Assembly (NCBI GenBank): GCA_047495785.1 | Contig: JBLDXI010000054.1 | Location: 1,426,001 to 1,490,000 of the forward strand | DNA length: 64,000 bases | Reading direction: 5' to 3' | Source of the DNA: Lepidodermella squamata | Taxonomy: Eukaryota > Animalia > Gastrotricha | Shown here: positions 19,411-62,357 of the stretch, piece by piece | How the letters are laid out: every line of letters starts with the position of its first letter | Position numbering within the stretch: the stretch's first letter is position 1 | The notes under the pieces: model-generated | Databases searched by the model: none | What the model was told of the DNA's origin: nothing | Seen by the model: the letters and a program-made list of their open reading frames with translations, nothing else | Translations under genes and position numbers: made by a program

Positions 19411-19970
19411 CTCCAGATCATATCTTCGCCCGAATCTAACATTATTCAATCATTGTTAAGGTCATGAACAGGTTTGCCTTTTCTTTGTTTTAATGACGGA
19501 TTTGATCGTTCTTATGGTTTTTCTAGCCCGGGCGTCTTCTTCATCCTCCGACAAGGTGTCCTCGCTCTCAGACAAGGCTTGGCGATGAATAATAATTAAA
19601 AATAACTCTCAGGCCAGCTGATTAATATTGTCCGTTTCGCGCCTTCAGTCAACACTTGAATGCTAATGCTCGTATAAAAAAATATATACTGACGTAAAAA
19701 ATTAAAAAAGATATTTTTAATATTAATATAATATAATAGAGTCGACTATATGCTCAAATTTAAATTTAGCTTGAACTTGTGATATATAATTATTAATTCT
19801 GCCCTTGCCACCGCGCTATTTTTGAATGGAAAGTATGCTCAGTTGCCATCGAGATAAAAATAACTCTGTCCCTAAACATCCTCGAGAAGCTCGACCGGCC
19901 GAAGTGTCATCTATTCATTCATCCGTTTTTCGTTTCAAATTCAACTTTCGGTTAAACCTTCTCTCTTAAG

Positions 19971-21740
19971 ATGACTTTTAGACTAGCTGTTCTTGCAGCG
20001 ACCTTGGGCATCGCCTACAGTCGTGAGTTACCGTCTCTTTCACGAATCATTTGGCTCATTTTGGGTGTATCTATTCAGAAAGTGTTGTCAGCTCAGCGAG
20101 ACCTGTCGAGTGCTCGAATGCAGTTCTCACTACCCCCTACCAGCCTGAATCCGGCAGTTTGTATGACTTCAGCAGTCATGGCATCCATTGCGCCACCGAC
20201 GCCAATTACCTCTCGGCTTGGAGGATTCAGAGGAGTGTAAAGGAGGCCAACGGTATGCAGTTTGCATACAAGTGCTGCAAGGCCCCGTCTGGTGCAAAGT
20301 GCAGACAGGTTGTCACTGGCTACACAGATGGCGGTAGCGGGAATGCCGTCTTTCTGGACAGACAGGATATCAAGTGCAACGACAATGAAGTTCTGAAAAA
20401 CTTCACCCAGAATACTATGACTGGACAGGTTCAATACTACTACACTTGCTGCGAGGTTAGTTTCAGCGTCCTCACGTCCAAATGTACTCTAGTGCTTGAG
20501 TGCCTCCAGTAGCAACTGATTCATGGGCAATGTTCCCCCATTTGGTGGGAATATTCTTGTGGCCAAATGGCCATGAAAACCTTCGAAGTTACAGGCTACA
20601 AGTTTCTCAGGGTTCCTGGTTTAGAAACCCCCGCAGACCATGTGGCAACCTGGTTAGAGGCTCTCATAAAAGCACATATTCTCATGCTAGGAGTTCGATT
20701 GTCAGGGATTATCGGAAGGTGCCTGGCAAATAGGAGCGCGCTCAGGGTGGGAACCAAGCAATGAATTTGCGACTGGTTCAGGGCACTCAGGATGGAAAAA
20801 TTATTTTATATCATGAAACTTTCTAAACTTATAATACCTTCTCATGCTTTCATATCTAGGTTCCAAGTAACATATTTGTTGTTAGCAAGGTGCTTGCCAC
20901 CAACTATAACGAGGAAAGTAGCAAAACGTGGTCCCTTGAACGTCACAATGTCGCCTGCGGGGACGGTGAGCTGATGCAGAGATGGCGCCTTCAACGCATT
21001 TCAGCCCAGGGCGTTTTACGCTTTGAATACAACTGTGCCATCTTAGGCATCTTGCCAGAACCTTGCAGTAAGTTGGAATACCTAAATTTACCATCGCACA
21101 ACACTTTTCCATGCAGCGACGCCCAAGTGGTACGAGAAGTGCCCCACTGCCAACCTGGTAACCGCGGAGACCAGTGACCTCAGCGGGAACATGTTCGGCC
21201 TCGTTCCTCACGAGGTCAAATGCCCCGTCAACAATTATCTAACTTCATTCGGACTGACCAGGCCCAGCGATACCACCATCCAATACTCGTACACTTGCTG
21301 CGCTGCCCCCACCGCTATGACATGCCGCGAAGTCGAGAACGCGTATACTGATAGCGGTAATGGCGACAGCAACTACCTGGACAGGCAGAATATCCAATGC
21401 AATGCTAACGAGCTCATGAGCAGATTCGTGTTACGAAAGAACCCTGCGAACGGCCAAGTTAGCTACGGCTATACGTGCTGCATAGTAAGAATTTCTGAAA
21501 TTGATCTACTAATTTTCAATGAGATTTTATCAATTTCAGATCGCAGGCAAAGTGACCACCTCAGCCCACGCGACCGAATACGCAGATGAAATAGGAATTA
21601 AAACCTACACACTCGTCGCCCATCGCCCGACCTGCAACGATGGCAAGTTGCTGCAACGGTTCCAAGTTAAGCGGAGTTCGGGCAAGACCCGAATCGACTA
21701 CACCTGTGCCAAGGTCGCGAACGAGGCTTGTGCCGCGTGA
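19971..21740 (+). CDS. Secreted cysteine-rich repeat protein, copy A (~401 aa, signal peptide + 6 repeats)
   Basis: Exons 19971-20022, 20079-20455, 20860-21067, 21117-21484, 21540-21740, all GT-AG, total 1206 nt in frame. Signal peptide MTFRLAVLAATLGIAYS. Repeats of the form T-x-Y...L(D/E)R(Q/H)x(I/V)xC...(F/W)xLxR...YxYxCC. AATAAA at ~21860. Confidence 0.88.
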
Positions 21741-23530
21741 ATGCGCGAATAGATACATTGTCGAGAGATTGAAAGCAGAATCGTTGTGAATGGTAATACC
21801 AATATTACCTAATAGTCGAGAGGGATGGAGTGAAATTCAGCTTGTAATGACAAAGGTGGAATAAATGAGCGAAAAGCTGATATAAATGGTGTCTTTCTGT
21901 TCTGAATCAAACTTTAAAATCTGAATTTCAAATATCACCTTCGATATGGTAAGAGCCGATACGTTAAAGAAACGGCTTGCACCTTGCACACACTTTCAAT
22001 CAAGAACAATGGGAATGCTGACATTCTCCAGAAGATAGACCCATCATCCATCATGTGTCGGGAAAAAGGGCTGGGGAGCGGAAGTGCGGCGCGGTAGGTT
22101 CAGGGGTTTTACGGACCTGAAAAACTTCCCGGCCTCCATCAAACCGATTAACGAAACTTCTCTTCAAAGTCTTTTTCCTTTATTCTGTGCTAGCAACATC
22201 TTAGCTGGTTCCCAGCTGGTCGAAATAGTGAATCATTCTGTTTCGTTCAAAATCGAAAATATTCTCAAGCGCCTTTTGCTGCCAAACGTTGAGTATCTCT
22301 GTTGTTTTGAATTGACCGCTGAAACTGACCATGTTTCCGACGTTACTACTGATTTAACGCAGTCGATTTTCCTGCATTCGATTGCCTGTGTCTGAGACAT
22401 CGCAAGAAGCGGGGCAATTCAATTGCACGTTCACCGAGTCGGCGTTCAAATTCTGGCACGTCACATGTAGACTCATCTTAAACAGCATGCTTAAACTGAA
22501 ATTTGCTTAAGGGCACATACTCCTTAATGACGGTCAGCGCAGAGGCAATCCCTCGAGTCAGCATGCTGTCACTGTTCAGGCCCGAGCCAGATTTTGGCCC
22601 GTCCGCTTTCGGGCCGGCCCGTATGCGACCGGGTAACAGGACGTTGCCACTCCGCGTTCAGGCCAGTCTATATAACATGCCCCAATGCGGGTAAGGTTAC
22701 CTTAATCTGCATAAAAAATATCCACTGTTTTCAAACGCTTAGTGAAGTTTTTATGCAGATTTATGGCACCTCCAGCGATTTTAAATGTTTGCCTTTTTTG
22801 ACTGTCAGCAACGATGGCTCCCTAACGGTGAGGAATTGGCTCATGAGATTTTGTGAGTTTACTCAAATGGGTTACGACTGTTTATGGTCACAATATGAGC
22901 CCGGAGAACCTCATGACAAGCGTTTAAAAGAGTGGAATTTTTTATGCAGATTTAGGTAATCTTACCCTAGTCTAGTTGCTGGTTCACTTTGTAAATTCGG
23001 AAGCGATTCAATTCGACAAGCTTTTTGCACGAGTAGCAGTTATTGTTGCGTCACCTTGACAAGCGCCTTATCATCGTTCTTTTGATTTTACTAGCCCTGA
23101 TCTCTGGGCGTCTTTTCATCCTCCGACAAGGTGTCCTCGCTCTCAGACAATGAATAATAATTAAAAATAACTCTCAGGCCAGCTGATTAATATTGTCCGT
23201 TTCGCGCCTTCAAAACTTGAATGCTAATGCTCGTATAAAAAAATATATACTGACGTAAAAAATTATAAAGATATTTTTAATATTAATATAATATAATAGA
23301 GTCGACTATATGCTCAAATTTAAATTTAGCTTGAACTTGTGATATATAATTATTAATTCTGCCCTTGCCACCGCGCTATTTTTGAATGGAAAGTATGCTC
23401 AGTTGCCATCGAGATGAAAATAACTCTGTCCCTAAACATCCTCGAGAAGCTCGACCGGCCGAAGTGTCATCTATTCATTCATCCGTTTTTCGTTTCAAAT
23501 TCAACTTTCGGTTAAACCTTCTCTCTTAAG

Positions 23531-25427
23531 ATGACTTTTAGACTAGCTGTTCTTGCAGCGACCTTGGGCATCGCCTACAGTCGTGAGTTACCGGCTCGTT
23601 CACCAATCATAAGCTCATGTTGGGTTCATTTTTTCAGAAATTGCAAAAGCTGTCGATTGCTCGAGTGCAGCTGTGACTACCGCCTACCAGCCTGAAACCG
23701 GCAGTTTGTACGATTTCAACACTCATGGCATCAACTGCGCCGACGGCAGCTACCTCTCTTCGTGGTTGATCCAGAGGAGTGTGAAGGAGGCTAGTAAAAT
23801 GCAGTTTGCATACAAGTGCTGCAAAGCCACGTCGGTCGGAAAGTGCAGACAGGTTGTTAGTGATAGGACAGATGCCGGCAGTGGGAATGCTGTCTTTCTG
23901 GACAGACAGGATATCAAGTGCAACGACAATGAGGTTCTGAAAGGCTTCAGCCAGAGTTCTATGAGCGGACAGATCCAATACACCTACACTTGCTGCGAGG
24001 TTAGTTTCGGCGTCCTGACGCCCAAATTTACTCTAGTGCTTGAATTCCTCCAGTGGACTCTGATTCGTGGGTGAGGTTCCCCCATTTGATGGGAATATTA
24101 TTGTGGCCAAATTGTCCTGGAAACCTTCAAAGTGCCAAGTTACAGGCTTCATGTTTCTCAGGCTCCTTGGTTTTGAAACCCCCGCGGACTATGAAGCAAC
24201 CTGGTTAGAGGCTCTCTTAAGAACCTAGTTTCCCATGGTAGGAGCCATCTGACAGAGATTATCAGAAGGTGCCTGGCTCTCATACTAATTAGCCGCAAAA
24301 ACTAAGCCCGAGTGTGAGCTTCCACTGGCCGGGGTTAAAGGACATGAATCTTTCCTCAGTTTCGAATACACCTGGCAGATAGGAGCGCGCTCAGGGTTTG
24401 AACTTTGTCCAGACAATAAATTTTCGACTGGTCCCGGGCATTCAGGATGATAAAATCCAACAGCCTTGTTTTTTAGGAATCCTCATCTCATGAAACTTTC
24501 TAAACTTTTAATACTTTCTCTTGCTTTCATATATCCAGGTTGGAAGTAGCGTTTATGTTATCAGCAGGCCGCTTGCGACCCCTTATAACGAGGAAAGTAG
24601 CAAAACGTGGTCTCTTGAACGTCACAATCCCGCATGCGCGGACGGTGAGCTGATGCAGAGATGGCGCCTTCAACGCAATGCAGTCCAGGGTGTTGTACGC
24701 TTTGAATACAACTGTGCCGTCTTCAGCGCCATGCCAGAAACTTGCGGTAAGTTAGAAATCCCCGGTTTACCATCAAACAACACTTTCTTCTTTGCAGCGG
24801 CCACTAAGTGGTACGAGTCGTGTTCCACTGCCAACCTGGTAACCGCGGAGACCAGTGACCTCAGTGGGAGCAGTTACGCCCTCGCTTCTCTCGACGTGAA
24901 ATGCCCCGCCAGCAATTATCTAACTTCATTCGGACTGACGAGGCCCAGCGAAACCACCATCCAATACTCGTACACTTGCTGCGCTGCCCCCACCGCTGTG
25001 GCATGCCGCGACATCGATACCGCGTATACAGATGGAGGCAGCGGCGACACCAACTACCTCGACAGGCAGAATATCCAATGCAATGCTAACGAGGTTATGA
25101 GCAGATTCATGCTACGAAAGATTCCTCCATACGGCCAAGTTACCTACAGCTACACGTGCTGCTTGGTGAGAATTTTCCTAAATCAAATGCTATCAACTTT
25201 ACAATGAGAGTTTATGATTTCAGATCGCAGGCACGGTGACTACCACAAACCACGAGACTGAATTCGCAGATGAAACAGGGACTAAAACCTACGCACTCGT
25301 CAGCCATCGCCCGACCTGCACCGATGGCAAGCTGCTGCAACGGTTCCAACTGAAGCGCAGCGGTACGGGCAAGAGCCGCATCGAGTACACCTGTGCTAAG
25401 GTCGCGAACGAGGCTTGTGCCGCGTGA
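23531..25427 (+). CDS. Secreted cysteine-rich repeat protein, copy B (tandem paralog of A)
   Basis: Exons 23531-23582, 23638-23999, 24539-24746, 24798-25165, 25224-25427. Same intron positions and Cys pattern as copy A. Confidence 0.88.
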
Positions 25428-25645
25428 ATGCGCGAATAGATACATTGTCGAGAGATTGAAAGCAGAATCGGTGTGAATGGGTAATACCATTATTACCTAA
25501 TAGTCGAGAGGGATGGAGTGAAATTCAGCTTGTAATGACAAAGGTGGAATAAATGAGCGAAAAGCTGATATAAATATATACATAAATGTCTTTCTGTTCT
25601 GTATCGAACTGTAAAATCTGAATCTCAAATATCACTTTCGATATA

Positions 25646-25761
25646 CAGGGCGTTCGCGTAATAATACTCTGGGTGAGCTCAAATTAGCTACAAAAAAGCT
25701 AAAATGAATGCAAAAAGTAGCAAAGCTATTATTAGAAGAGTATTATTACGCGAACGCCCTG
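25646..25761. mobile_element. Tc1/mariner-type MITE (25-bp TIR, TA TSD)
   Basis: CAGGGCGTTCGCGTAATAATACTCT ... AGAGTATTATTACGCGAACGCCCTG, flanked by TA. Absent from the paralogous site downstream of copy A (~21945). Confidence 0.88.
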
Positions 25762-26175
25762 TAGTTAGAGCCGAGATGTTAAAGCAGTGCGCGAGGTAGG
25801 ATTCTCGAACTACTCGGGTATTTTCGGGCCCAAATTTTATGACCAAAGGGTTCCCCCCCCCCCCCCCCCCCTCCCCTGTGGTTTTCTTGGGGATTTTACA
25901 CTTTGGCCTTGTGAACGGGGGGGGGGGCGATACCCCTCATAAACGGCTTGCATGTTTCATAAATTGTTAAGCTGGATCAAAGTCTTCACACCCCAAAACA
26001 CGGCTTGCTTCGACCGTACATTTACCATTGTTAATCAGAGTTGCCGGAACAATGTCGGCTTTAAGTGTTGGATTAGCAGCTCGAATTACGTTTATGCAGC
26101 TAGGACAGCTTCCAGACTGAAGATCTGGACGGATGATGGCGTAGACTTTTCGGAGCATTCTTACAGTTAACAATT

Positions 26176-26631: not shown

Positions 26632-27892
26632 ATGCCAATTTTGCTGATTTTCTTATCTTTCAAGATACTGATCGTGATACATTGCGAGGAGTATAACAGT
26701 ACGATCTCCGAATTTCACGCCGAAGAAGCGGTTCTCGTCGAAACAGTTTTCAAAAACTGCGACTTGGCCGCTAAGGTCCGGCCGCTCGCTAAATTCAGCG
26801 AAAGAATGAACGTCTCAATCGAGATAATCCCAATTAGATTTCGCAGTTTGGTCGATAAAACTGAAACGTAAATAGCATTTCCACGTGTGCTTTCGATTGA
26901 TTTCTGCGTCGGTTTGACATAGGTTGTCGCTTAACATGGAAATAGACATTGGCTGGCGTCATCCTTGCACGAATTGGTCGAGTAATCCTCGATTCAATGT
27001 TGACTATTTTAAAGTCATGGCTGAGGATGTTTGGTACCCACAGCTCATCATGCCAAATGGGGTTGATATGGCACCCTTTGAAAGGTTAGAAAACGTAATT
27101 TTTCCGAAATCCTTGACTATGGTCCAGTTTTTTAGCCTTTCCAAGGTCACTCGAGTATACTTCTACTCCGATGGTAGTGTTCTCTGGCCTGTTATGACCA
27201 CATTTTCAGCAATATGCAAAATGGACATAAGAAAGTTCCCTATGGACCGACAACGCTGCAGTATTATCTTCGAATCATGGGAAAACAGCAATCGCATCAA
27301 TTTCATCCTCAAAAATACTGGATTGGCTATTAGAATGGATGAATTTGTGTCTGAGGGCGACATTTGGCGACTGCTGAACGCAACAGTTGTGAAGGAGAAG
27401 CACGTTTACCCAGAGAGTGACTGGGACTATCACCGAGTAGTCGTGACTTTCGATCTGGCACGGAAGTTTCAAGTTTACGTAACCACGATTTACATCCCAT
27501 GTTTGATTCTGCAAGCCATGGCTTTAGGGTCGGGTTGGATTCCGGCCCATTCCTCTGACAGGCCAGTCTTTTGCATCTCAGTTCTACTGTCATTTGTAGT
27601 TCTTCAAACCATAATAATTCAAGAAATTCCTAAATCGGCCCAAATTGCAAATATCGTCCTATTCCTCGCGATTCAGATGGGTCTTAGTTCTCTTCTCACA
27701 GGCTTTACAATGCTAACTTGCGACCTGTCTGAACGGCAATGGTTCAAGAAAGGCGAAATCGTTGCTATTGAGTCGAAATCCAAGATCGATAGACTTAAAT
27801 TGCTCGATGCAATCTTTTACTCGTTTATGGCTGTGTGTTTTGTGTTGACAGACTGCGGAATTTATCTTGCTAGCTCTATTTGGGAGTTATGA
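26632..27892 (+). CDS. Divergent pentameric ligand-gated (Cys-loop) ion channel subunit, nAChR/5-HT3-like, ~401 aa
   Basis: Exons 26632-26867 and 26923-27892 (55-nt intron). Signal peptide, VRP, WYPQL, Cys loop CKMDIRKFPMDRQRC (C-x13-C), FESW, four TM helices and a short M3-M4 loop. Confidence 0.9.
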
Positions 27893-28514: not shown

Positions 28515-30725
28515 ATGAGGTTTATAGCTCTAGCTCTGATAACTGCTGTAACTGCAATGAAGCAGAAAACTCTTCACATGCTCGTCAACTTTCAGTTCCC
28601 GAAAAATCCCGCGGTTGGTTTGATGACAGAATGTATGCAGGCAGCTCAAATCGCTCAACAAAACGCGAATAATCAGTACCAATTTCTGCCAGATTACAAC
28701 GTCGAGTTGGAATTCGGGGACACTCACCCTGCAGCTAGCCGGCCTGGCCAAAATGCTTTATTCAACTACACGAGATTCATTGAGGATAGACCTTGGCTCT
28801 TACCTTCCCCAATCGTGATAGGGCCGTTAAATGACGACGGTTGTAAAGCTCTAGGGCTGTTGGCCTACGCCATGAATATCACAGTAATTTCATTAGGCTG
28901 CCCAGCCGATTACCTTTATGATCGCCAGAGATTTCCGAACTACTTCCTTATGACCGAACCTACCGAAGCGCGTCATTGGGCATATTTGAAGTTCATTAGA
29001 GAGGTGGGCAACTGGACCAAGGTTGGGATAGTTTTCGACCCTGAAACGTTCAAATTCGCCAGGGAGGCTGATTTAATCCGGAAAAGAGCAGGCCCACAAG
29101 GTATCGAGGTTGTTTGGTTCGATGCCTTTCGCCGCTTCGATTTCGAAGTCATCAAATCAATGAAAAACTCAGATGTTCGAATCATTCTCGTCCTGCTATC
29201 AAACGTGCCTTTATTAACGAGTTTCTTATGCTACGCTTTCTCCGCTGGAATCACGGGCAATCGCTACTTTTTCCTGGCCTATGGCTCGGTTTTAGATCCT
29301 CTTACAATACCAAACCATGTTTTCGCCCCCGGCTGTAATCGCGATATAGTTATCGAACAGCTCCAGTACATGTTATGGCTATCAAATCTCGACGAACATA
29401 TTGACCAGACGCAGAATTCGTCGTTTGGGTATAATCGGGCAGAATTTGATGCGGATTTTGACCTGTTTACAAACAAATCACGTGGTACGTTATACGATTT
29501 GCGATATTTGTGCCACGATGGTGTCCTGCAGTCTGTCATAACGCTGGACATCGCGGAAAAGCGATTAAATTTGATTAATTCGTCGCTGGATCAATACCGA
29601 CACAGGCCACGCGATATCTCGCTCATTGTTAATCAAGCTGCTAAGGAGGTCGACTACCGAGGTCTGAGAGTTTCGAGGCTCCACTACGACGATAATGGGA
29701 TACTGCAGGGCCTACCGATTTTCCTTACTTACTGGACTCCAGAAAGGCGTTTCAGTCGTGTTTATGCGATCGAAAATCAGACCGAAATAAAGCGATCTGG
29801 CGACAGTATCTGGAAAACTGACAATGGCGAGCCACCTAGAGATGCTAGGCGATTTCTCAGCAGCGTTGCAGCTCCGACTGAAGGGGAATCGCTTGGGATA
29901 CAGTTCATCTCAGCAATGTCGATTATAGCTACAACAGTTATGATAGCTCTTTACTTCAGGTGGATGGATTCGATTGATACTGCTTTCCTAAAAATCGCGG
30001 CTTTAATTGGATGTGCCCTCCTTCAAATCTCTTCCATAGCTCACGTCACAGAGGGCTTATTCTCGCCTTTAACCCATTGGAACCTTAGAGTAAGCCTGTT
30101 CTTTGTTGGGCTGACCTTGGTCAACAGCAGCATTGTCTTAAGAATGGGACTTTTCTTTCACGTCTCCCTTCAAACTCGGCAGATCGCGAAACGACCTGAA
30201 GTTAGACGGCAGGTTGAGAAAGCCATTCTTGCCTCTGTTCAAGGAACCTTGTTTATGCTTTATGTCCTAATGCTCGTTATCAATTGTGCATTATTCGCCG
30301 CTTGGCAAGCTTCAGACCCCTCCCGATGTGATTTAACGGTTTCCAACATCTACTACGACTACGAAATGGACGTAACATTGGAGACGAAGCTTAACAAATG
30401 TATCTCGATAACAGAAAGCAGATCAGGTTGGGTTTGGACTATGGTATGCGTTCAATTTCTGCCTGTTCTACAAGCTTGCAACTGGGCGATCCATTTGCGG
30501 CAAGTTTCCCGCAAGCACATCGTTAAAAAATCCTTTCAAGTCGCGAAAATTGAGATAGCAATCGCTGTCAGTATTGAAGCAGCTGGGGTGCTGATATTCA
30601 TACTACTTTCTCACTATCCTATCAATCAGCAAGTAGCTGTTGCAGCACTCTGCCTTGCCTTAAGCCTCTTAATTGAACTTCTATGGATTTTCGCCGACTT
30701 CAGCCGACGAAGAAATTATGATTAG
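28515..30725 (+). CDS. Intronless class C GPCR, GABA-B-like (Venus flytrap/ANF-receptor domain + 7TM), 736 aa
   Basis: Signal peptide; FLPDYNVEL, IVIGP, RQRFPNYF, WTKVGIV and DVRIILV motifs of the Venus flytrap domain; no Cys-rich domain; seven hydrophobic segments including GLTL in TM3 and WQASDP after TM4. Confidence 0.85.
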   Translation: MRFIALALITAVTAMKQKTLHMLVNFQFPKNPAVGLMTECMQAAQIAQQNANNQYQFLPDYNVELEFGDTHPAASRPGQNALFNYTRFIEDRPWLLPSPIVIGPLNDDGCKALGLLAYAMNITVISLGCPADYLYDRQRFPNYFLMTEPTEARHWAYLKFIREVGNWTKVGIVFDPETFKFAREADLIRKRAGPQGIEVVWFDAFRRFDFEVIKSMKNSDVRIILVLLSNVPLLTSFLCYAFSAGITGNRYFFLAYGSVLDPLTIPNHVFAPGCNRDIVIEQLQYMLWLSNLDEHIDQTQNSSFGYNRAEFDADFDLFTNKSRGTLYDLRYLCHDGVLQSVITLDIAEKRLNLINSSLDQYRHRPRDISLIVNQAAKEVDYRGLRVSRLHYDDNGILQGLPIFLTYWTPERRFSRVYAIENQTEIKRSGDSIWKTDNGEPPRDARRFLSSVAAPTEGESLGIQFISAMSIIATTVMIALYFRWMDSIDTAFLKIAALIGCALLQISSIAHVTEGLFSPLTHWNLRVSLFFVGLTLVNSSIVLRMGLFFHVSLQTRQIAKRPEVRRQVEKAILASVQGTLFMLYVLMLVINCALFAAWQASDPSRCDLTVSNIYYDYEMDVTLETKLNKCISITESRSGWVWTMVCVQFLPVLQACNWAIHLRQVSRKHIVKKSFQVAKIEIAIAVSIEAAGVLIFILLSHYPINQQVAVAALCLALSLLIELLWIFADFSRRRNYD

Positions 30726-46800: not shown

Positions 46801-49800
46801 TTAGATGGCAGTTTCTGGACGGCTAGCTAGGTAGGCCTTCATCTCCGGAGTTGCCTCAACCGCGTTCTTGATCGCAACCAGCGTCGGGTATTTAGCTTCA
46901 ATGTCAGCCCAGTCGACTAACGTCTTAGCAGCATCTAACGTAGTAGCAAGCGCTATATCGGCATACGTGGGCTGGATAAATAATTTGTAATAAAAATAGA
47001 AGGAAATATCAATCTTACAGCATCTCCTCCGGCGACGCTTTTACCGCCATGGGTCGAGGCTTGTTTTTCCAAGTAGCTTAGATTGCGAGGAATATTGTCA
47101 GTTTTGAGCTTTGCAACCGCTTCATCCTGAAATTTCAATTCAATTTTCAAAAGAAACACTGTCGTGGTGCCCAGAAATTCAATTTTTCGTAATTGTTTAC
47201 CTTTTTAGCTGCGTCTGGCGCCTTGTACACCACGTACACGCCATCCCAGACGTCTCGCAAGCTGAAAAAGTTAATAACACATTTTACCCACGACCTGAAA
47301 AAGTTGTTTCGCTTTTTTCAAAAAAATTTTCGGTAACCTCCCGCGAATATTTTCACTTTTCACTACACCGGGTTAACCGGCGGTAATTTCCGGTTAACCC
47401 GGTCTGAACCTTGAATTTACGAGGACCGAACCGAACCGGACCGGAGGCTCTGAAATTAGGACCGGCACAGCTCTATTTTGAATAATGGAATTGAACTAAC
47501 AATTGCCTCCGCATTTCGAACAAAATTTTGAATCGATGATAAAAAAATCCAGGTACATTTTTGCCAGGGTTCCTGCACTAGATTTTTCTAAAATATTGTT
47601 TACCAATTTTGGATTTAAAAAATAAGTGATTTTTCGGAGATTTTATATTTCGCAATTTATTATAATAATAATATAATAATGTTTTTATTTATCCTCTTCG
47701 GGACTGAGCGTCGTGTACCGTTTCCGGTTTTGAAGAGGGCGAAGGCAGGCGAAGAATGATCCTCACCCACCCCCACAGTCGAGGATTCTGCTTTTTGTAT
47801 AGAATTCGTAATTTTCAATCGAGTTAACAACCATGCGCCATTCATCTTTTTCAAAAGAAACCGATTCCGCTAGTTGGACATCGGGAATAATTTTGATCTC
47901 AAAATCCTTTTCGCCGGGATTTTTTCTATTTTCTCGTTTCTTAGTGGCTTTATTTTTCTTATCCTTGACCTTATTGTTCTTATTGGTTTTCTTTTTCCGG
48001 CGAATTTCCTTAGTAAGACCTACTTTAATTAGGCTTCTATGCACTCCGTTGATCCATCTGGTTCGAGGTCTACCTCTGGGTGCAAACCACCCAAGCGGAG
48101 GCGTCCAAATATATATTTTGTGTATTAGTCCTTCTACGTCATAGTCACGTGACCTAATTATGTGCCCTAGATACCTTAGCCTTTGTTTTTCAACAATGCG
48201 GCTCACTTCAATGAGACCTCCGCATAACGCAAGTCGAATGTCTATATTTGGAATATAGTCCATTAGGTGGACACCTACTATAGATCGAAGCCATCGATAT
48301 TCTATAGTGTTTAGTCTATTTTCTTGGGCTATCGATATGTTCCACGATTCGCAGGCGTAAATGATGGTAGGTATTATAACACATGTCAGTACCTTAAGTT
48401 TTGTAGCTATGGAAACCTGACTTTTGTTGCACATGAATTTATTCATGGCGCCGAAAACACTGCCTGCCTTAGAAATTCTGTAGTTTAGTTCCTCATCGAT
48501 TTTGCCGTCACTGGTAATAATGCTCCCTAAATATTTAAATTTGGTCACTTTTTCAAGTTTTTTCCCGTTCAATTCCAATTCGTAATTTTGAGTGGCTGAC
48601 TCGTCTCTAGAAATAATCATATATTGAGTTTTTGCCGCGTTAATTTTCAGACCCAATTCGGTGCAAGCCAAATCGAAAATGTGAAGTAGTCGTGAAATTT
48701 CGTCGTGGTTCATGCCTAAAAGTGTTCCGTCGTCAGCAAACGCTAGTAAATTTAGGAAATCAGTCTCGCTCATAGCGGTCTCGCTGTTTGCGGTCTCGCT
48801 AATAGGAAAGCCTAATTTTTCAGCAGATATTTTTTCGCAAATTTTGTTGAAGGTCGCTATGAATAGCAAAGGAGACAACGGGCAACCCTGTCTTAGTCCC
48901 CTGGTAACATAGAAGAAATCTGAGAGCTCAGAATCGACTCTAACAGCAACTTTATTTACTTTATATAGACTTTGAATAGCTTCAATTAAGCTGGGTTCTA
49001 CACCCATATTTTGGAGGGCGGCCCATACTTTTTCCCTGTCCACCAGATCATAGGCTTTTTCGAGATCGATGAAGACTAGGTGAAGTTCCTTCTTAAAGAA
49101 TATAATTTTCTCAATAATTTGTCGGAGAACGTAAATGCAGTCTCTGGTGCATTTATTATATTTGAAAAAATTAAAAAATTAAAATTAAAATTAAATTGAA
49201 ATAAAGGTGAAATGTCAACTCATCCGCGACAAGTCATCCGGTTACAACTCATCCGCGACAACTCGTCCAGCGACAACTCATCCGAAATTAAATAAATATT
49301 TAAATAATTATTTTTAGTGACAACTCATCCGGTGACAACTGGTCCGGCCCGGCCGAGTTGTCGCGGATGAGTTGTCACTAAAATTAAATGATTAATTATT
49401 TTTCAATTATTATAATTCTCGGACAACTCGTCCACGGACAAGTCATCTGCGACAACTCATCCGAATTTACCAACAAATGTTATATTTCGAATTTCGGATG
49501 AGTTGTCCGCGGACGAGTTGTCTGAAAATTAAAAAAAAATTAATTATTTAATTTTAGTGACAACTCATCCGCGACAACTCGGCCGGGCCGGACCAGTTGT
49601 CACCGGATATGAGTTGTCACTAAAAATAATTATTTAAATATTTATTTAATTTCGGATGAGTTGTCGCTGGACGAGTTGTCGCGGATGACTTGTCGCGGAC
49701 GAGTTGACCGCGGATGAGTTGACGCCCCACGGAAATAAAAACTTTTTTAATTAAAAGCTAAAAAAAAATCATTTTTAAATTCAGCCTAATTTCGCTTATG

Positions 49801-60707: not shown

Positions 60708-62357
60708 ATGTATTCTCGTTATCGGCGCGAAAACCTCGTTGGCCCTCGCGTGATGAAGTTTGAAACGGCGGAAAGAATCCAGGAAATGTCAGCTTTCGCT
60801 GAGAGCATATACAATCCGTTGTACATGGACGACTTTGCCATCTCTCATTTGCCTGTAGTTGACATCAAAGCCGAAAACATGATCAAGATCGAAAAAATTC
60901 TGAAGCGCGGCACGGACGAAGCTCATCCCGGCAAATTCCTTCTGGCTCGTGTGATGGAAGTTCACTCGATAACTAAGGTTACCATCGGCTTCACGCTGGA
61001 CGATCCAGATGGTGTATACACCATTCCATTCTTGTTCGTCTCTCCTGGAGTAGCCTATCAGCGTGGCGAGTTTGTTACATTTGATCTTCATGATGCTCAA
61101 CATGAGTTCATGCACTCCATTCCCGTTGGTTCGATTGTAGCTGTGATGAATCCGTGGCTCACGATGTCTGGCAAACTGCAGAGTCGCAATTTAAACCACC
61201 TAGTCGTCCTCGGGAAACATCACCCGCTATTTGATGATGGTAAAATCAAGTTTCGTGCACCGGGACCTGGCCGAGCTAGTCTCAAATCTTTCGATAACAT
61301 GGAACCAAAAGATGCTGGTGTCAAATATTTCGCTGCTAAAAACTATTTAATGGCAAAGGAGTGTTTTTCCAAAGCGATTTTATCCGCCGACGATGATGAA
61401 GCTCGAGGAAAACAATACGCAAATCGAGCTATGGCCTATCTCTGCCTTTCAAAACCGAAAGAAGCGCTGATCGATGCGGACAAAGGGCTGGAATTCGACC
61501 CGAAAAACGTGAAATTGGTCTATCGAAAGGCGAAATCTCTCTTTATTTTGGCTCGCTACGAAGAATGCGTTGAATTTCTGCGAAAAATGAAGGATAAATT
61601 TGTCGATAACGAGTTGAAAGATTTACTGGCTCAAGCTCAAATTGCCGTTGTGGAGTGTGAAACTGGAAATTACGATATCGAAAAAATGCAAGAAGAATTG
61701 AAAAGTCATTCAAGTCTTGAGAATCACGCCGAATTTTTCAACGAACAGCACCTTGAAATTGTCAAGAAGAAAGAAAAATCTGAAATACGAGTGAAGGATG
61801 CAATCAAATCGGACTCGCTGCTAATGGCTTCGAAAGCTTTCGTGTTTTATCCCAAAGTGGAGAAATTTGAATGCAAAATGTGTGAAATGGACGGTAAACA
61901 CGACCATCTCAATGTCATGGTCGAACCTTGGAAGCAGATCGAAACGCTTTGCAGCGCTAAAATTTCGGCCGATTCTGCTGCTTTTGAAGATATCAAACAG
62001 CTGGGGGATTTTTCGGATTATTTCATGCCAACAAATTATCGGAATGAATACGTTTCAAGTGACGAAGATGATATGCCTGATGAGTATAAGAATGACGAGA
62101 GAAAAATGGCTGGCGAAGCCCGATTTGCTTATGGCGAACGGCATGTTATCGAGTCGATTTGCGAGAATGATTTGTTGACGTCGAAAAATCCGCACAGCAA
62201 CAAACAATTTGCTGGATTATGGATTCGCCCATCTATGATCAAGCGATCGAAGAAGCTAGCCGCTAATTGCTCGATGCAATTTTTGGGTAATTTTTGCTTC
62301 ATTCGCGCGACTCGAGATATCAAGTCAGGTGAAAAATTGGTTCTGCCTAAGATGTAG
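60708..62357 (+). CDS. TPR-repeat protein with a C-terminal degenerate SET domain, 549 aa, intronless CDS
   Basis: TPR segment (YANRAMAYLCL...ALIDADKGLEFDPKNVKLVYRKAKSLF), SET-N-like IRVKDAIKSDSLLMASKAF and SET-C-like GLWIRPSMI...FLGNFCFIRATRDIKSGEKL. In-frame stop just upstream of the ATG. Confidence 0.8.
   Translation: MYSRYRRENLVGPRVMKFETAERIQEMSAFAESIYNPLYMDDFAISHLPVVDIKAENMIKIEKILKRGTDEAHPGKFLLARVMEVHSITKVTIGFTLDDPDGVYTIPFLFVSPGVAYQRGEFVTFDLHDAQHEFMHSIPVGSIVAVMNPWLTMSGKLQSRNLNHLVVLGKHHPLFDDGKIKFRAPGPGRASLKSFDNMEPKDAGVKYFAAKNYLMAKECFSKAILSADDDEARGKQYANRAMAYLCLSKPKEALIDADKGLEFDPKNVKLVYRKAKSLFILARYEECVEFLRKMKDKFVDNELKDLLAQAQIAVVECETGNYDIEKMQEELKSHSSLENHAEFFNEQHLEIVKKKEKSEIRVKDAIKSDSLLMASKAFVFYPKVEKFECKMCEMDGKHDHLNVMVEPWKQIETLCSAKISADSAAFEDIKQLGDFSDYFMPTNYRNEYVSSDEDDMPDEYKNDERKMAGEARFAYGERHVIESICENDLLTSKNPHSNKQFAGLWIRPSMIKRSKKLAANCSMQFLGNFCFIRATRDIKSGEKLVLPKM

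Follow-up and report, generated by a model that had tools for sequence, protein, structure and literature searches.

An expressed tandem gene pair of the gastrotrich Lepidodermella squamata encodes doubled, cysteine-rich modules with a probable distant kinship to dermatopontin

The dermatopontin family, which includes vertebrate dermatopontin, the Limulus haemagglutinin/amebocyte aggregation factor and relatives in molluscs and cnidarians, carries three DR(E/Q)WxF/Y motifs and ten Cys residues arranged in five loops; dermatopontin itself binds collagen and decorin. In Dln1, lamprey immune protein, the natterins and CEL-III, a lectin located in front of a pore-forming module finds the target. 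Here, a tandem pair of genes, g1 and g2, is described from a 64,000-nucleotide genomic stretch of the gastrotrich Lepidodermella squamata (contig JBLDXI010000054.1, positions 1,426,001 to 1,490,000). This whole stretch is referred to as the window, and coordinates are counted from its first nucleotide. Both genes are expressed, and each would encode a secreted protein of approximately 400 residues in which a signal peptide is followed by two modules of approximately 175 residues. The module probably represents a family of its own that is a distant relative of dermatopontin. On the combined evidence, the two products are moderately likely to be soluble, two-headed binding (agglutinin-like) proteins built on dermatopontin-like modules.

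The two genes lie head-to-tail on the plus strand (g1, 19971-21740; g2, 23531-25427), and each contains five exons, which were derived by hand from the reading frames and GT..AG sites and subsequently checked by script:

19971..20022, plus strand: g1 exon 1, start codon and putative signal peptide (MTFRLAVLAATLGIAYS/Q), ending in phase 1 (reading frame; the same exon is kept in paralogs)
20079..20455, plus strand: g1 exon 2, module 1 repeats 1 and 2 (8 Cys), YTCCE followed by a phase 0 intron (donor joint 20455/20860 in complementary DNA, cDNA)
20860..21067, plus strand: g1 exon 3, module 1 repeat 3 (2 Cys) and the extra Cys212, ending in phase 1 (reading frame, cDNA joints, Cys comparison with paralogs)
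21117..21484, plus strand: g1 exon 4, module 2 repeats 4 and 5 (8 Cys), YTCCI followed by a phase 0 intron (cDNA joints; match to the module profile)
21540..21740, plus strand: g1 exon 5, repeat 6, the extra Cys399 and the stop codon (one cDNA contig joins 21383-21484 to 21540-21740)
23531..23582, plus strand: g2 exon 1, putative signal peptide, the same as that of g1 (reading frame, g1/g2 comparison)
23638..23999, plus strand: g2 exon 2, repeats 1 and 2 (joint 23999/24539)
24539..24746, plus strand: g2 exon 3, repeat 3 and the extra Cys207 (joint 24746/24798)
24798..25165, plus strand: g2 exon 4, repeats 4 and 5 (joint 25165/25224)
25224..25427, plus strand: g2 exon 5, repeat 6, the extra Cys395 and the stop codon (reading frame, cDNA)

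The spliced g1 product has a length of 1,206 nt and encodes 401 residues, and that of g2 encodes 397 residues; both contain 22 Cys residues and terminate directly behind repeat 6. Judged by eye, the N-terminus of g1 has the form of a signal peptide, and divergent paralogs likewise have a signal-peptide exon with a short intron behind it. Every intron is of the GT..AG type, with phases 1, 0, 1 and 0 in both genes. In the contigs of sequencing run X1, 5,601 letters of which were aligned, the exons are covered, and the introns and the spacer between the genes are empty. A SMART adapter visible in one contig identifies this run as a cDNA library. The adapter in question, SMART IIA in reverse complement, is located just before position 23540 and probably marks a chimeric contig end rather than a real 5′ end. 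The X1 contigs contain GT..AG joints at 20455/20860, 21067/21117, 21484/21540, 23999/24539, 24746/24798 and 25165/25224, so that six of the eight introns (introns 2, 3 and 4 of both genes) are present in cDNA exactly as modelled. Intron 1 of g1 and g2 is not seen in these contigs. This gap, together with the stop codons present in the related loci L030, L033, C19:3590114 and C18:147115, is what could be cited for a chance pattern, mis-modelled reading frames or decaying, functionless duplicates. Such an explanation is extremely improbable and can be considered already refuted: both genes have an unbroken reading frame, cDNA confirms six introns with coverage restricted to exons, all 22 Cys residues are conserved between the copies, the ratio of nonsynonymous to synonymous divergence (dN/dS) is below 1, and the matches to module profiles described below are very strong.

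An earlier note on this stretch, made from its letters and open reading frames, had described a signal peptide and six repeats in two halves with 11 Cys residues per half. This description is borne out: all four of the repeat motifs that it quoted are found, and the two halves of g1 align with 37% identity over 180 residues (E value of 9e-39), with the Cys residues in the same order in both. Aligning the halves one repeat out of register still gives significant matches (6e-14 and 7e-7), which indicates that all six repeats are related. Each module of approximately 175 residues therefore consists of three repeats of approximately 57 residues. The canonical repeat contains four Cys residues, C1 to C4, and reads C...ND.G.GN.V(Y/F)LDR(H/Q).V.C...L..F.L.R....RY.YxCC. 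Repeats 1, 2, 4 and 5 carry all four, whereas repeats 3 and 6 lack C1 and C4, like the paralog L021. Only two of the six repeats, 2 and 5, retain the GxGN..(F/Y)LDRQ motif, and the corresponding stretches are identical or nearly so between g1 and g2; repeats 1, 3, 4 and 6 have diverged.

The intron pattern is doubled as well, as the note had pointed out: with the phases given above, introns 2 and 4 of g1 share one aligned column, behind YTCCE and YTCCI, respectively. Exons 2 and 3 sum to 585 nt and thus form a symmetrical 1-1 unit. The proposed duplication of a two-exon, phase 1-1 module with three repeats fits the exon lengths, the phases, the intron positions and the tree, in which the first halves of g1 and g2 are sister to the second halves (97/84). 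Among the extracted five-exon paralogs that have both halves inside the extracted DNA, the upstream half is in every case closer to half 1 of g1 and the downstream half closer to half 2. This correspondence places the doubling before the spread of the five-exon subfamily. The extracted paralogs terminate as g1 does and bear no lectin heads.

Each half additionally contains one Cys residue behind its third repeat (Cys212 and Cys399 in g1; Cys207 and Cys395 in g2). Since repeats 3 and 6 are the ones without the first and last Cys, pairing of C1 with C4 and of C2 with C3 within a repeat is suggested. Both extra Cys residues are present in six five-exon genes (g1, g2, L003, L005, L017 and L019) and both are absent from at least five paralog groups (L006-L011, L012, L013/14, L015 and L020). 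In L012-L015 and L020, which belong to the C18 and C106 clusters of the genome (G000), translation stops 1-3 codons before a relic of the final "..AC..", and the extra Cys of half 1 is missing too, so that both residues were lost together. That the two residues come and go together speaks for a bond between the halves, in agreement with the inter-domain bond that had been suspected from the odd Cys count. From the paralog comparison, a Cys212-Cys399 bond probably ties the end of module 1 to the C-terminal tail.

To describe the fold of the module, AlphaFold was run on module 2 of L021, an intronless paralog, using an alignment of 105 rows. The resulting model (predicted local distance difference test, pLDDT, of 92.4; predicted template modelling score, pTM, of 0.88) contains three successive units, each consisting of short strands, a short helix, a strand and a long hairpin. 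The three repeats would thus pack as disulfide-pinned beta units, probably around a pseudo-threefold axis. A prediction devoid of threefold repeats had been named as evidence that would speak against the note's view of a three-fold, disulfide-rich beta domain of beta-prism or dermatopontin-like type; the model of the paralogous module instead shows three beta units. This view is further backed by shape matches to dermatopontin, PCSK9 and Vip3 and by weak matches to the dermatopontin (DERM) model. In a shape search of the ESM Atlas, the module superimposes on giant-virus clusters with template modelling (TM) scores of 0.87-0.88, on a plant MACPF protein with a TM score of 0.65, and on a chordate cluster, 90% of which carries the Pfam DERM assignment, with TM scores of 0.60 by query and 0.54 by target (146 residues, root mean square deviation, rmsd, of 3.9, both structures being predicted models). 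Structure searches with the module revealed no close solved structure, and no solved dermatopontin structure turned up among their results. The whole Cys/His-rich C-terminal domain of PCSK9, which consists of three resistin-like subdomains, matches the shape of the module, but with approximately 10% identity, a weak E value of 4e-3, an rmsd of approximately 5 Å and no relation in sequence; this likeness is one of architecture only. Middling scores with no sequence similarity were obtained for Vip3 chains, for the APC-beta domain found in apicomplexan perforin-like proteins and for the C-terminal part of plant MACPF proteins, and these domains lack the four-Cys repeat. The residues matched in Vip3Cb1 correspond to beta-prism domain III.

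Relative to dermatopontin, the module is likewise secreted, rich in Cys, approximately 150-180 residues long and composed of three repeats, each of which ends in aromatic-x-aromatic-x-C(C). The dermatopontin repeat (...NR....C......DRxWxFxC) is laid out like the module repeat. The DERM model (PF14704) weakly matches 14 of the 105 module sequences, with a best E value of 6.3e-6, and the language-model features of L021 point first to clusters that bear DERM. In contrast, the signature of the module is GxGN..YLDRH..C...RYxYxCC, while that of dermatopontin is DR(E/Q)WxF/Y, which g1 and g2 lack. The canonical module contains 12 Cys residues and those of the window proteins 10-11, compared to 10 in dermatopontin, and in the window proteins the module is doubled, unlike in dermatopontin. 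When ten canonical modules were scanned singly, no DERM match was obtained. It is on this balance of likeness and difference that the module is described above as a probable separate family.

In a six-frame search of the genome (121.2 Mb, 151 contigs), exon 4 gave 75 matches and the module profile 122, counted by exon. By these matches, the pair is not a one-off but part of a large gene family, with roughly 35-40 related genes in the genome. An estimated 25-30 of these would be five-exon, two-module genes, several of them clustered (contigs C18, C106, C66 and C54). In-frame stops are present at L030 (G000:C4:74206-77535), L033 (C48:1015635-1018967), G000:C19:3590114-3590521 and G000:C18:147115-147498, which are probably pseudogenes. 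The intronless relatives include the two-module open reading frame (ORF) L021, a 299-residue ORF with a different N-terminal part (L023), and a subfamily in which a signal peptide and one module are followed by a C-terminal domain of approximately 150 residues (L022, two genes in L024, and loci on C4, C48, C55 and C34). This last subfamily comprises at least eight genes, and its C-terminal domain is aerolysin-like and contains a Ser/Thr-rich loop. Representative genes are:

L024:1195-2232 and L024:3014-3976 (G000:C25:2284194-2286975; duplicate on C26): module-aerolysin genes (model and searches)
L022:2609-3601 (C34): module-aerolysin gene

The model of a 346-residue L024 paralog (pLDDT of 86.6) matches, in residues 196-346, almost only aerolysin-type pore formers. 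The C-terminal domain resembles in shape CEL-III, Cry51, monalysin, epsilon toxin, lamprey immune protein, Dln1 and lysenin, with Foldseek E values of 2.5e-4 to 7.6e-4 for lamprey immune protein and Dln1 and a probability of 1.0 for lysenin. Feature searches with two paralogs also indicate an aerolysin-like domain. Pfam recognises neither part of these proteins. Based on the predicted model, this subfamily is likely a pore-forming toxin family of the animal. A search of the genome with the pore domain found no match within the window; the pore module is found only in the paralogs (L022 and L024).

Outside this genome, the module is widespread. The window exon pieces and three intronless paralogs gave no useful match in Pfam, and the module is covered by no Pfam model; a confident match to a well-characterised, conserved animal family, the other result that the earlier note had set against its reading, was thus not produced by Pfam. 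Sequence searches of the PDB with one exon and with a profile found no match, and a word-index protein search with the 231-residue open frame at 24512-25204 found none either, a result that is uninformative owing to the length window of that search and to the apparent absence of proteins of this genome from the collection. No description of the module was found in the literature on the motif or on dermatopontin in connection with structure or aerolysin. A nine-module profile searched against 1.84 billion representative proteins (clusters at 50% identity) matched 2,338 clusters at E≤1e-3 and 391 at E≤1e-30, all of them unnamed. Conversely, a profile of six metagenomic modules, none from this genome (A6), matches g1 at residues 48-203 (2.9e-29) and 228-391 (3.1e-33) and g2 in the same way, with E values for the two halves of either protein between 1e-28 and 1e-33. 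In taxonomic profile, the labelled members derive from a dinoflagellate (one transcript), a green alga (Klebsormidium nitens, KFL_003890180), giant viruses and animals, and all are hypothetical or uncharacterised. The module is carried by 24 IMG/VR loci, many of which lie on giant-virus bins, and the model match to A9YW57 of Ostreococcus tauri virus OtV5 has an E value of 8.5e-14 and a TM score of 0.82.

By both profile and shape (TM scores of 0.82-0.88), the proteins of giant viruses and protists, such as OtV5 A9YW57, those of Edafosvirus and that of Klebsormidium nitens, contain the same three-repeat module. They mostly have one module with all 12 Cys residues and the canonical motif in every repeat, whereas the window proteins have two modules, retain the motif in repeats 2 and 5 alone and have two Cys residues missing from repeats 3 and 6. 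Proteins of approximately 390-400 residues with two modules are also encountered in other lineages (the public metagenome proteins P0014, P0026, P0042 and P0043). In each of these, the two halves are mutual nearest relatives, which indicates that the doubling happened repeatedly. P0042 is almost free of Cys, and the disulfides are therefore not needed for the fold. Elsewhere, the domain partners of the module include tectonin, TSP1 and LDLa, as well as ricin-B (also in a Tupanvirus protein) with LDLa, and some relatives carry collagen domains. In P0055 (2,101 residues), the module occurs with seven trefoil domains and an ILEI domain. In P0020, it lies behind a MACPF domain, the position in which perforin-like proteins carry their membrane-binding domain.

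These arrangements bear on function. The module-aerolysin paralogs share with the lectin-aerolysin chimeras Dln1, lamprey immune protein and CEL-III an N-terminal domain of binding type followed by an aerolysin-like pore module. The chimeras use a jacalin or ricin-B domain at the N-terminus, whereas the paralogs use the three-repeat module and the window proteins have no pore module. Because the module occupies the place of the lectin before the pore domain and that of the membrane-binding domain behind MACPF, it is most likely a binding domain, and since the window proteins contain two modules and no pore part, they are most likely soluble two-headed binders. In the proposed mechanism, the module would be the part that holds the target, as suggested by its receptor- or membrane-binding place in the aerolysin-like paralogs and the MACPF protein and by its linkage to lectin domains elsewhere. 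Each module keeps the canonical motif in a single repeat (2 or 5), which would leave it one intact site. g1 and g2 could then cross-link or coat a surface ligand (a glycan, lipid or matrix protein) and act as an agglutinin, opsonin or matrix linker.

Several observations weigh against this reading. The canonical motif is lost in four of the six repeats of the window proteins, and the module might serve another role here. The structure that was folded in place of the window protein is module 2 of L021, whose identity to the exon-2 and exon-4 portions of g1 and g2 amounts to 35-42%. As for the tie to dermatopontin, the DERM model gave no match at E≤10 in the window exons or paralogs (cut-off of 28.3 bits) and none at E≤1 in the whole genome. 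PF22609, a candidate rejected as a spurious match to an 11-residue motif, is found in more of the 105 members than DERM. With regard to the bond between the halves, L016 and L018 carry the second extra Cys only, a mismatch, and shared ancestry inflates the count of Cys co-occurrence.

The distant likeness to dermatopontin also invites the proposal that g1 and g2 are structural components of matrix, cuticle or adhesive, which would organise the extracellular matrix (cuticle, basal lamina or adhesive-gland secretion) in the manner of vertebrate dermatopontin rather than recognise foreign surfaces. The proteins appear secreted and rich in disulfides, their two modules could bridge matrix fibres, and some relatives bear collagen, TSP1 or LDLa domains. 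However, it is with pore-forming and lectin domains that the module is most clearly partnered, both here and elsewhere; rapid divergence in a large tandem family (dN/dS of 0.53, approximately 35-40 genes) bears more resemblance to recognition or defence than to a structural part; and the DERM search indicates no canonical dermatopontin in the genome. A matrix role is thus considered unlikely.

A further possibility involves the pore-forming paralogs directly, with g1 and g2 as their partners or regulators, which would compete for, mask or pre-cluster the same target (a decoy, a self-protection factor or a co-factor), or as toxins or effectors in their own right that strike prey or microbes without lysis. 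Several families of lectin-aerolysin toxins are accompanied by relatives with the lectin only, and the window pair shares its targeting module with at least eight module-aerolysin genes of this genome. Yet the window modules are approximately 25-35% identical to the modules of the pore-forming paralogs and fall on a separate branch, so that a shared ligand is not implied; moreover, the genes are unlinked, and no aerolysin-like match is present in the window. This role is accordingly viewed as quite improbable, and two-headed binding remains the preferred reading for g1 and g2.

On a wider scale, it is tentatively proposed, with rather less assurance than the binding role, that the LDRH/YxCC module is an undescribed, ancient superfamily of target-binding domains, a sister of dermatopontin, that spans giant viruses, algae, protists and animals. 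Pore formers of two unrelated kinds, aerolysin-like and MACPF, may repeatedly have adopted it as their aiming part, and at least five independent doublings may have given rise to two-headed binders, among which the window pair would be an expressed animal example with a lineage-specific inter-module bond. What is new is the module family and the use made of it rather than the kind of biology. The pair offers an expressed, cleanly modelled animal example of a common module that has no family name, solved structure or known ligand. The analysis yields a confident predicted fold and a candidate entry for a new protein family, with a likely distant tie to dermatopontin, whose structure and binding mode are poorly understood. 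The occurrence of the module in the receptor-binding place of aerolysin-like and MACPF pore formers, and beside lectin domains, provides a functional lead, and identification of the ligand would annotate thousands of proteins, including those of giant viruses of algae. In the Gastrotricha, a phylum with almost no molecular data, the approximately 35-40 putatively secreted genes, some of them predicted pore formers, are a candidate defence or feeding system.

Between the two copies, the proteins are approximately 75% identical (297 identical residues), with a dN of 0.138, a dS of 0.258 and the dN/dS of 0.53 mentioned above, and all 22 Cys residues are conserved. The signal-peptide exon is identical in the two genes, and the 450 base pairs (bp) upstream are 98% identical, compared to a coding dS of 0.26:

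19521..19970, plus strand: g1 upstream region, 98% identical to 23081-23530
23081..23530, plus strand: g2 upstream region, counterpart of 19521-19970

That the 5′ end is far more alike than the remaining coding sequence suggests gene conversion or constraint. The 450-bp stretch is probably a shared promoter and 5′ untranslated region conserved by one of these processes. In the spacer between g1 and g2, an element resembling a miniature inverted-repeat transposable element (22689-22967) is flanked by 31-nt terminal inverted repeats that are 94% complementary. The depth of DNA run X2 rises to approximately 2,500 over this element, compared to approximately 40-80, which marks it as a high-copy repeat. 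Just 3′ of g2, a small element (25644-25763) has perfect 27-nt terminal inverted repeats separated by 66 nt, and beside it a poly-C tract (25847-25867) and a poly-G tract (25917-25937) form an imperfect inverted pair. Elsewhere in the window, and named from translation alone, are an exon similar to Cys-loop ligand-gated channels (26924-27892), a single-exon ORF of 736 residues similar to class C G-protein-coupled receptors (28515-30725), a reverse-transcriptase fragment on the minus strand that resembles a long interspersed nuclear element (47763-49043), and a TPR/SET-like ORF of 549 residues (60708-62357).

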